Translations under genes and position numbers: made by a program
Origin: Intoshia linei
Lineage: Eukaryota > Animalia > Orthonectida
Length of the DNA: 49,608 bases
Direction of reading: 5' to 3'
NCBI GenBank assembly: GCA_001642005.1
Contig: LWCA01000132.1
Location: forward strand, 1 to 49,608
The notes under the pieces: model-generated
Database searches by the model: none
What the model saw: only the letters and a program-made list of their open reading frames with translations
What the model was told of the DNA's origin: nothing
Shown: piece after piece, positions 18,039-40,000 of the stretch
How positions within the stretch are numbered: the first letter of the stretch is position 1
Layout: each line of letters starts with the position of its first letter

Positions 18039-18669
18039 ATGGATAAAAAAAATTTAACATTAGGAAGAAAAAATATTGATACTAGTTCTATACAGGACTT
18101 GTTAGCAAAATATGATATTAAAAACTACGATGATGGTGTCATCCCTGCTGTAGTTGAATTTGCATATAGTAATTATTTCGTCTTTTTATTTTTATTATTT
18201 TTTGGTTATACTTCACGAATTGTCAATGAAGCTGATGAATACGCATCATTTAGAGGAGATAACATGATAAATGAAAACGATTTAAAATTTTCTATAGATA
18301 ATTACGCAGTTCAACATGGAAATTTTAAAGTGAAAGTATTAATTTTAATATAACTAAAATACCTGTTTATTTAGAAAATGTATAATATTGCAGCTCAAAA
18401 AAATTTAATACCATTACCTACAATCCAACCGTTTAAGGGTATTAAAATACCTGATGATAAAAATTCTCTAACTAATCCGACATATACACTTAAATTGAAA
18501 GACGTAATTTTATTTTAGTATGTATTTAGAAATTTATTTTTAGACACACCAATTTACTAAACCAAACTTATTATCAAACTTTCAATTCAAAAGAAGTGAT
18601 GTTGCAAAATGTAACTCTAATGTACCAATTTCAAATGTTAAAACTCTAAATATTAATAGAAACAATTAA
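18039..18669 (+). CDS. TAF9: TFIID subunit TAF9 (histone fold), 4 exons if 18169-18204 is spliced
   Basis: IQDLLAKYDIKNYDDGVIPAVVEFAY/YTSRIVNEADEYA..INENDLKFSI, then IAAQKNLIPLPTIQPFKGIKIPDDKNSLTNPTYTLK, match the TAF9 histone fold and conserved C-terminal region. Confidence 0.92.
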
Positions 18670-37052: not shown

Positions 37053-40000
37053 ATGAAAAACATATTTCCAACAGGGTTTTTAAAAGAATTGAAATTCTTG
37101 CTTAAATTGGCATGTCCTATAGTAATATCAATGTCATTATTTTATTTTTGTTGGTTTTAAGTCAATTTTTCCAAATATTGATGTCCCCAGTAGCAATGAT
37201 ATTTTGTGGGCATTTAAATGATAAATACGCGTTAGCTGGTGTAGCTTTGGCTATTTCTGTAATTAATGTCTCATCGATTTGTTTTGCAATGGGCCTCGGA
37301 ACGGCGGTCGATACATATATGGCGCAAGTAAGACCTTTAAAATATTAAAATGCATCTACTTATAGGCATATGGAAGTGCGAAAAAATACAAAATGGGAAT
37401 TATTCTTCAGCGAGGTTGTTTTTAAAATGTTAATATATTCCTATTTAGTAATGATTATTTTCATGATATTTTGTTCATTGTGTGTGGCAACCCATCTCCA
37501 TGTTGAAAGAATCCTTATATTACTCTATCAAGAAGCTGGAATATCCAAGTAATTGATTTTAATGTGATCAAGTTTCCACCGTGTGATATGTGGTTTAAAT
37601 GTCTTACTGGAAAATGAAGATAAAATATAATTTTTATAAATTTCGATGTTATAAATAGTTATTACTTACTAATTCGATTATTCTACCAATAATCATAAGT
37701 ATAATTGATTGAATGGGCGGATTTAAATTACTTGTGAACTATCACAAGAGCAATATTATTCATTTTTATTGTTAGCACTTTTGTAAATAATAATAATTTT
37801 TTTCTGTCATTCACCCTTACTCAATTATAAGTTGAAACCGGATCCCATTGATATATAGTCATAAGTAATGCTTCATTATTTCCAAAATAAATTTTTATGG
37901 CCCATTTAACAATTTTTGGAATAAAAGAGCCCATGTGTCGGAAATATTGGAGACCTTATCAAAACCAGTCACCCTAAAAGGCTATATCGAATCAGAAAAT
38001 ATCACAGTATTCAGTACAAAAAAGTAATTTTGAGAAACTTTAAACGATATATAATTGGATTATAAGTATAACAGATAAACAGACATTGATAATTATCAAT
38101 AATAAATATTATAACAATCTTCATTCGATCAACTTTTTACGATTTATTCATATACAATTTATTTATATATTAGAATTGCAGGAGACTACGTCATTTTATT
38201 TATTCCTGGAGAAATAGTAATAATACTTTGATATGTTAATATTTTTAGTGTTTCTTTTTGTATACCTGCATTTCAAAATACTTACACAATCAGGTATATA
38301 TGTGTTATGTGTTATGTGATATATTATTTTTAAGAATATCGTTGTCCCCTGTACAATATCGTGCATAATAGCCAATATCATCAATATATTTTTGCATTGG
38401 CTTCTTGTATTTTATTATAATCTAAAAGTGATGTAAGATTATAATATTGTATTATTACCTAAAATTTTATATGTAGTGGATCAGCCATAGCACTTTCTGT
38501 TAGTTATTGTTGGATGCTGGCGATTTTATTATTTTATGTGGGTGTTTCTCGTGTTTTTGTTGATTCTTGGACAGGTAATTGTAACATTTTAATCTTAAGA
38601 TATACAACCATAGGGTTTTCATACCAAGCTCTGTACGGTTGGTGGAGTTTTATTAAATTGGCAATACCGGGAGCTCTTATGATATGTTTGGAATGGTGGG
38701 GGTTTGAAATTGGAGTGATAGCTGCTGGTTTACTAGGTCCTATACAACTTGGTTCACAATCTCTCGTATTACAATTAGATTCACTTTGGTTTCAAGTATT
38801 ATAAATTATATATCAAATTAATATATAATTAGATACCTATGGGATTCCAAATAGCAACTTCTGTCAGAACTGGCCAGTATATGGGTGGAGGAAACAAGTT
38901 AAATGCCATAACATTGTGCCGAGTAGCTATTATTTCAATATGTTTGCACATATTTATACTTATTAATTCATATTATTAGCTGTTTTATCTATCTTCGTAA
39001 TTGTTTTTTTTACAACATGTCGGAAGTTGCTTCCATCTTTACTAACAAATGTTTGGTAATTTGTGTATTTGATTTTCTATATTTTTAGGGAAGTAGTTGA
39101 TTTGTCGGCCAAACTTTTACCAATTATTGGAATATATATGTTCTTTGATGGCATAGCGGTATGTACCAAATTAGTGTAGTGTAACAATCAAAACAGTACT
39201 GTTATAAATTATATTTATGGGATATCATTGCACAATAAATGTTCTACTATTTACCTTTGTATACATATAAAAGCGTAAATGAGAAATGAATGATAAATAT
39301 ATTATATTTACATATATAGAGGGCATAAATCCATATTTTAAATATTCAATGTTGTATTGTTAACACTTTTTTTTGAGCTAATATAATATTCATTTACAAA
39401 CTTAGAATTTTTAAGTTTAAAATTTCAGTACAAAGTACAAACTTAAGTTTAAAATGAATCAATTTTTTTGTAATATACATAAATATATAGCGTAATTAAA
39501 CATTACATAAATGATATAAATATAAATTAATAAATTTAATAATTCTTAAATATATCTCCCATTTTTTCAATTGTCCACCATTGGTGGCGATATTGCCCAC
39601 TTTGGGAACCACTGCATTAAAGTATCCAAATAGCATACATTAGTGCAAAAATGACATTATGTTTTAAATTTGACATGTCATTATGAAATAACTAATATTC
39701 GTTACAAGGTTAAACAGTGAACTTGGCAGACCTAGGAGTGCAGAAAAACTAATTATGTATAAGTGTCTAACTCGTATTATATTTTTGTTTGTATTATCTC
39801 AAAATTTAAACTGACTTCATGTTAGTGTGGTCTCCAGTCAAATAGATATTTACACGACACTCTACTCAATATAAAATAATTATTTAATAGACCGTGTGCA
39901 AAGGTATTCTTCATGGAACTGGAAGACAAAGAATCGGTGCTATAATAATGTTTGTATTTTATTACATTTTTGCGCTGCCTATAGGACTAAGCATAATGTT

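Follow-up and report, generated by a model that had tools for sequence, protein, structure and literature searches.

An intron-like segment of 36 nucleotides ending in TG within the histone fold of the Intoshia linei TAF9 gene: a candidate GT-TG micro-intron

What is to be made of a short segment that interrupts a conserved coding sequence, carries a good splice donor and a T-rich body, and ends in TG where an AG would be expected? This is the question raised by positions 18169-18204 on the forward strand of the 49,608-nucleotide stretch of Intoshia linei DNA analysed here (hereafter the window), which is eukaryotic DNA of 26% G+C from a 41.6-Mb assembly in 3520 contigs. Short introns and the size of the genome are both on record for this animal (PMC6543705). 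A first-pass annotation had described the segment as having a good donor, the typical size of 36 nt, a T-rich body and a TG end, and on each of these points both the sequence itself and the intron census reported below agree with it.

The segment lies in a TAF9 gene of four exons (18039-18669, forward strand) with three intron-like gaps, two of which are ordinary GT-AG introns. Exon 1 (18039-18168) starts with the ATG at 18039, and its translation ends in ...EFAY followed by the first base of a split Ser codon; exon 2 (18205-18335), as delimited by the parser, opens with the GT that finishes this codon and then reads YTSRIVNEADEY.... The second intron (18336-18374) is a GT-AG intron of 39 nt, a multiple of three with in-frame stops, and the third (18504-18543) is a GT-AG intron of 40 nt; between them lies exon 3 (18375-18503), and the last exon (18544-18669) carries the TAA stop. 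The gene matches the Pfam family PF02291 (TFIID-31kDa) with 54.9 bits, where the cut-off is 29, and it does so exon by exon along profile positions 7-122: residues 14-43 of exon 1 correspond to positions 7-36, exon 2 to positions 38-69, and exon 3 to positions 84-122 (31.3 bits). The codon score of exon 1 is +0.28 per codon.

These features bear on the possibility that the gene is a decaying pseudogene in which the TG is one lesion among others, which we regard as scarcely credible. The odd acceptor itself and the want of a matching database protein speak for it, and nothing else does; no further lesion is present, both the start and stop codons being in place, the remaining two introns normal and every exon that matches Pfam undamaged. 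A profile search found this gene to be the single PF02291 match in the whole genome, and a TAF6-like partner is present, with two matches elsewhere to the TAF6-type histone-fold family PF02969 (26.6 and 25.9 bits).

The database result was as follows. A word search with the 104-residue read-through open reading frame against a collection of 5.8 billion proteins, over lengths of 57-182 residues, returned no match, itself included. No form of the TAF9 gene, with or without splicing, is in the collection within that length range, so that public annotation may lack the gene or model it wrongly. A search of the PDB with the same read-through matched no TAF9 chain.

The segment itself (GTAATTATTTCGTCTTTTTATTTTTATTATTTTTTG; 18169-18204) contains 25 T, 6 A, 3 G and 2 C in its 36 nt, and is thus 69% T. 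It begins with GTAATT, ends with TTTTTTG, lies in phase 1, and is both a multiple of three in length (3n) and free of stops in the frame of the gene. Inspection of 18169-18204 found no AG within it, the nearest being the A|G that spans the donor (18168-18169) and the AG at 18230-18231. The terminal TG (18203-18204) occupies the place of the AG and is flanked as normal acceptors are, with T at -3 and G at +1, so that one base separates the segment from the consensus acceptor TTTAG|G. Read through, the protein runs ...EFAY-SNYFVFLFLLFFG-YTSRI..., which adds 12 hydrophobic residues to TAF9 and sets 75 residues against 63 profile positions. Once exactly 36 nt are removed the colinearity becomes perfect, as the first-pass annotation had claimed, and Pfam joins profile positions 36 and 38 by way of the split Ser codon. 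Because GT recurs directly after the segment, moving both boundaries by +1 (TA..GG) or +2 (AA..GT) leads to an identical product; GT..TG is the only one of these options with a standard donor. We also considered an intron ending at the AG of 18168-18169 and rejected it, as the conserved exon 1 would be lost. Over 100 kb and on both strands, this is the only T-rich in-frame stretch within a long open frame that has a strong donor and lacks an AG, and the comparable stretches in the same DNA are all ordinary GT-AG introns. The uniqueness of the segment therefore points to more than chance.

How closely the segment resembles the introns of this genome can be judged from a census of 100,136 bp, made up of the window and twelve stretches surrounding genes for CCT chaperonins. 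Introns were called with a parser that combines codon log-odds, weight matrices for donors and acceptors, and a length prior; it was chosen because the pairing of long open frames proved too noisy at 26% GC. The census comprises 69 GT-AG introns with confident coding flanks, which end in AG by construction. Their lengths form a sharp peak with its mode at 36 nt (13 of 69 introns are of exactly that length and 29 fall at 35-37 nt). At donor position +3 there are 45 A, 23 T (a third of the introns), one G and no C, which is to say A or T in 68 of 69, and G is found at +5 in only 12 of 65. Acceptors have T at -3 in 58 of 65 cases and most often G at +1. The introns are also uniform in their 3' parts, with some 6-8 nt between the last A and the end of the U-tract.

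Against this background the TAF9 segment conforms in its GTAATT start (with A at +3), its length of 36 nt, its T at -3 and its G at +1, and departs in one trait only, the terminal dinucleotide, which is TG instead of AG. With the end dinucleotide ignored, its intron score of 7.17 nats is higher than that of 99% of the 69 census introns, and its acceptor scores 5.79. The gene spliced at TG scores 30.05 nats and the read-through 20.04, so that splicing gains about 10 nats as long as TG itself is not penalised. In coding terms the segment scores -0.20 per codon, and each of its flanks about +0.27. When all 16 end dinucleotides were allowed at a penalty of 5 nats, the segment was still called as an intron; the only other non-AG call with confident coding flanks came from a MATE transporter gene in the same window (see below), the remaining 68 of 70 introns ending in AG. 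A U12-type intron was considered and rejected. The donor GTAATTAT (GTAATT) is not the RTATCCTT box, and by its sequence the segment can be classed as U2-type; minor introns do tolerate varied 3' dinucleotides, and one GT-TG intron is listed among them (PMC1557818), but the TAF9 donor excludes that class. Judged from its letters, then, we are highly confident that this is an intron, or was one until very recently.

Whether it is still removed, and where, is a separate matter. Our preferred reading, which we hold with slightly less than even confidence, is that the segment is a real U2-type micro-intron that is most likely still spliced at the TG. Splicing there would yield a TAF9 of 171 residues with a normal histone fold. 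The main cues for the 3' cleavage point may be how far it lies from the branch region and the conserved last G; that distance may play this part is suggested by the marked uniformity of introns here. The penultimate base, normally A and here U, would be read only at the second catalytic step, at which U would occasionally be accepted, and this last step is modelled on documented TG acceptors in human and fly genes.

GT-TG introns are indeed documented as a rare class of U2-type intron in both human and Drosophila. Human TG 3' splice sites were found in 36 genes, in every case as alternatives to an AG at a distance of at most 28 nt, with position -3 taken by a pyrimidine and position +1 by a purine (Szafranski et al. 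2007, PMC2374985). Such TG-AG tandem acceptors occur at about 0.02% of human introns (PMC2374985), GNAS and TSPYL2 being two examples (PMC4176328). In Drosophila melanogaster, FlyBase R6.04 holds 23 GT-TG introns, of which 19 have RNA-seq junction support and 13 lie within coding sequence; they form the commonest non-canonical class, and for 22 of them a similar alternative splice exists (PMC4528330).

The TAF9 segment resembles the human tandems in its U2-type donor, its pyrimidine tract and its TTG|G context. It also has an AG inside the 28-nt limit, at 27 nt (8 nt in the MATE gene), but an AG within 27 nt also lies downstream of 71% of ordinary acceptors in this genome, and AG proximity alone is not significant. 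The human sites are alternatives to a productive AG, whereas here most productive splicing would have to go through the TG, since the nearby AG is embedded in conserved coding sequence in TAF9 and puts the protein out of frame in MATE. The TAF9 case further differs from the human tandems in being a 36-nt micro-intron, and one known here from genomic sequence alone. The comparison with Drosophila is between two animal genomes with short introns, although GT-TG introns number a few per ten thousand in the fly and one or two among a few dozen in this window. On the preferred reading of splicing at the TG, the AG 27 nt downstream may aid early recognition of the intron, as has been proposed for the human TG-AG tandems, and may give rise to a minor in-frame TAF9 product lacking 9 residues.

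That same AG could instead be the one that is used. It is the first AG downstream of the TG (18230-18231), it is in frame, and its use would remove 63 nt as a GT-AG intron and leave a TAF9 without nine residues of helix alpha-2. An AG-only version of the parser chose this site when untrained, and the outcome would mirror that of human AG>TG disease mutations, in which neighbouring AGs are activated and the TG is not used (PMC2374985), a precedent that also weakens the TG reading for TAF9. We nevertheless consider use of the downstream AG highly improbable. The residues that would be lost align to the conserved profile positions 37-45 of PF02291, the acceptor scores -3.39 and the intron -6.4, the gene as a whole then reaching 14.2 where splicing at TG reaches 30.05, and a length of 63 nt lies far out in the census distribution.

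Alternatively, the intron may have been inactivated, with the 36 nt now constitutively retained and TAF9 either tolerating or crippled by the 12 hydrophobic residues added to alpha-2. A segment that is 3n and stop-free keeps the frame when retained and goes unseen by nonsense-mediated decay, and the ease with which inactivation of such an intron would escape surveillance is a second point that weakens the TG reading. The AG-only parser in its trained version favoured the read-through, human AG>TG mutants do not splice at the TG (PMC2374985), and a fast-evolving parasite lineage could fix damaging changes. A good deal stands against retention, however. An AlphaFold model built from the read-through sequence alone, at a low mean pLDDT of 61.8, has helices at residues 15-24, 34-73 and 79-92, and places the insert in the middle of the second of these. 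The first-pass annotation had located the segment in helix alpha-2, and it would fall within the central histone-fold helix, which in this low-confidence model would grow from about 28 residues, the canonical length, to 40; on this modelling, retention looks harmful. The insert also has the poor codon score given above, and the remainder of the TAF9 gene, the sole copy, is intact. The donor and the U-tract are still perfect, so that any inactivation would have to be very recent. Retention would, moreover, leave the MATE case unexplained, since there it truncates the protein. On balance we think constitutive retention distinctly unlikely.

The first-pass annotation had offered two options, a spliceosome tolerant of TG or an intron in the course of becoming exon. 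Both stay in play, but the list was incomplete, as it lacked the AG 27 nt downstream as well as an error or polymorphism at the odd base, to which we return below. The divided behaviour of the AG-only parser has a practical side in that gene finders confined to GT-AG would mis-model TAF9 with either a 12-residue insert or a 9-residue deletion, and this may explain the missing public TAF9 protein.

The census offers a wider view of introns whose retention would keep the frame. Lengths of 3n are not depleted (30 of 69 introns, the mode of 36 nt being itself 3n). Only 2 of these 30 are free of stops in the reading frame, against 17 of 60 control frames (the other two frames of each), and this suggests selection for in-frame stops in 3n introns, such that retention gets caught; the count is small, and the parser is biased against calling 3n introns without stops. 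An ordinary GT-AG intron of similar appearance to the TAF9 segment (36 nt, 3n and stop-free) is present in one of the CCT genes (L004). In Paramecium and other eukaryotes with tiny introns, Jaillon and colleagues reportedly found in 2008 that 3n stop-free introns are statistically depleted under translational surveillance. The TAF9 segment is like such introns in that its retention would be invisible to nonsense-mediated decay; that work differs in dealing with statistical depletion and not with non-AG acceptors.

The second candidate for a TG acceptor is the first intron of the MATE transporter gene, also on the forward strand. Exon 1 (37053-37121; MKNIFPTGFLKELKFLLKLACPI) gave no match to Pfam or the PDB in the tools used, and we take it to resemble the segment of human MATE1 just before TM1. 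It is followed by a candidate GT..TG intron of 32 nt (37122-37153; GTAATA...GTTG), which is not 3n; reading through it shifts the frame and then meets a stop, and gene finding restricted to AG truncates the gene at this first exon. Exon 2 (37154-37327; VLSQFFQILMSPVAMIFCGHL...) matches PF01554 at profile positions 4-58 (E = 4e-10) and corresponds to residues 48-102 of human MATE1; a search of the whole genome with PF01554 gave no match at genome-level E-values. With splicing at the TG, exon 2 begins V-L-S-Q, and S3 and Q4 align by HMMER to V48 and Q49 of the human protein. Set against human residues 31-47, exon 1 presumably ends at exactly residue 45, and the TG join would then be gapless against human MATE1.

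Three frame-compatible models exist for this intron (within 37122-37161): GT..TG of 32 nt, GTC..AG of 29 nt and GT..TA of 38 nt. The first scores -0.76, at the 25th percentile of the census introns. The second is the sole GT-AG alternative (37133-37161) and adds one residue; it scores -7.48, below all 69 census introns, and has a C at +3, which occurs in 0 of 69. The third, in which two residues are lost, was the choice of the parser itself. The MATE site would thus seem to favour real use of TG, judging by the sequence, although the support that recurrence lends to TG splicing rests on this one ambiguous junction.

The TAF9 and MATE sites share a donor context of ATA|GTAAT and an acceptor context of TTG|GTT (18166-18173 and 18202-18207 in TAF9; 37119-37126 and 37151-37156 in MATE). 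Of the 69 census introns, one has ATA| before its donor and five have |GTT after the acceptor; the shared context is a post hoc observation. The two sites are also alike in that the sequence between the TG and the following AG starts with GT.

The MATE site bears most directly on whether the TG of TAF9 is real at all. The letter could be a base-call or assembly error, or a rare allele, the true sequence being TTTTTAG|G and the segment an ordinary 36-nt GT-AG intron. All but one of its bases make a textbook intron of this genome, and a single A-to-T miscall after the T run would give the same picture. The odd base follows five T, and T runs are a context prone to phasing errors. The assembly is, besides, a draft in 3520 contigs, and the CCT loci are without TG acceptors. 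Such an explanation sits poorly with the MATE gene, which lies in the same 50-kb window and has the same A-to-T difference at -2 of its acceptor (37152), with no homopolymer before it. Two independent errors at the same acceptor base, with no other examined splice-site base affected, would be an improbable coincidence, and we therefore consider an error or rare allele at TAF9 unlikely. Should the TG nonetheless prove to be an error or a null allele, the finding would be an ordinary one.

How common, then, are TG acceptors in this genome? Among about ten CCT genes (about 50 kb) none needed a further TG acceptor, and over the 100 kb of census DNA a non-AG acceptor was needed at the TAF9 and MATE sites only. 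A TG intron predicted in a CCT gene on contig C436 was rejected as an artefact of a long canonical intron. The orphan junctions of the AG-only parse that we inspected on gene strands likewise turned out to be long canonical introns, and the other pairs looked, in part, like antisense artefacts. TG acceptors are therefore rare in this genome and form a small class at most, and tolerance of TG as a pervasive, genome-wide feature, one way of taking the first suggestion of the first-pass annotation, is not borne out by these counts. A bolder proposal would be that TG is the constitutive and sole productive 3' splice site of a small class of introns, perhaps ~1% of them or fewer, marked by ATA|GTAAT ... 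TTG|GTT; we offer this as a doubtful but serious possibility. Were it true, the spliceosome of this animal would set the 3' splice site by distance and the last G, and not by the AG dinucleotide.

If the TG of TAF9 is both real and used, as in the reading we prefer, an essential gene would have a constitutive intron whose sole productive acceptor is TG, a situation absent from the human survey. Such a case would also offer a natural test of the parts played by AG and by distance from the branch point in the choice of 3' splice site within ultra-short introns.

The CCT genes yielded several further observations on intron structure. Two fairly similar CCT paralogues, L004 and L003 (contig C457, 10078-10923, reverse strand), differ at one site. 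The copy on contig C3388 has a GT-AG intron of 36 nt, 3n and stop-free (L004, 1476-1511, reverse strand), and the copy on C457 reads through there in one open frame, a difference in intron presence between paralogues. Another CCT paralogue, L002 (1501-2955, reverse strand; contig C2466, 10750-12204), is an intronless open frame of 504 codons, unlike the other CCT genes, which are split by many micro-introns, and may be a retrogene-like copy. Finally, a CCT intron at L030 (1454-1516, forward strand; contig C1958, 8868-8930) is 63 nt long, 3n and stop-free, with a weak GTTTTT donor.
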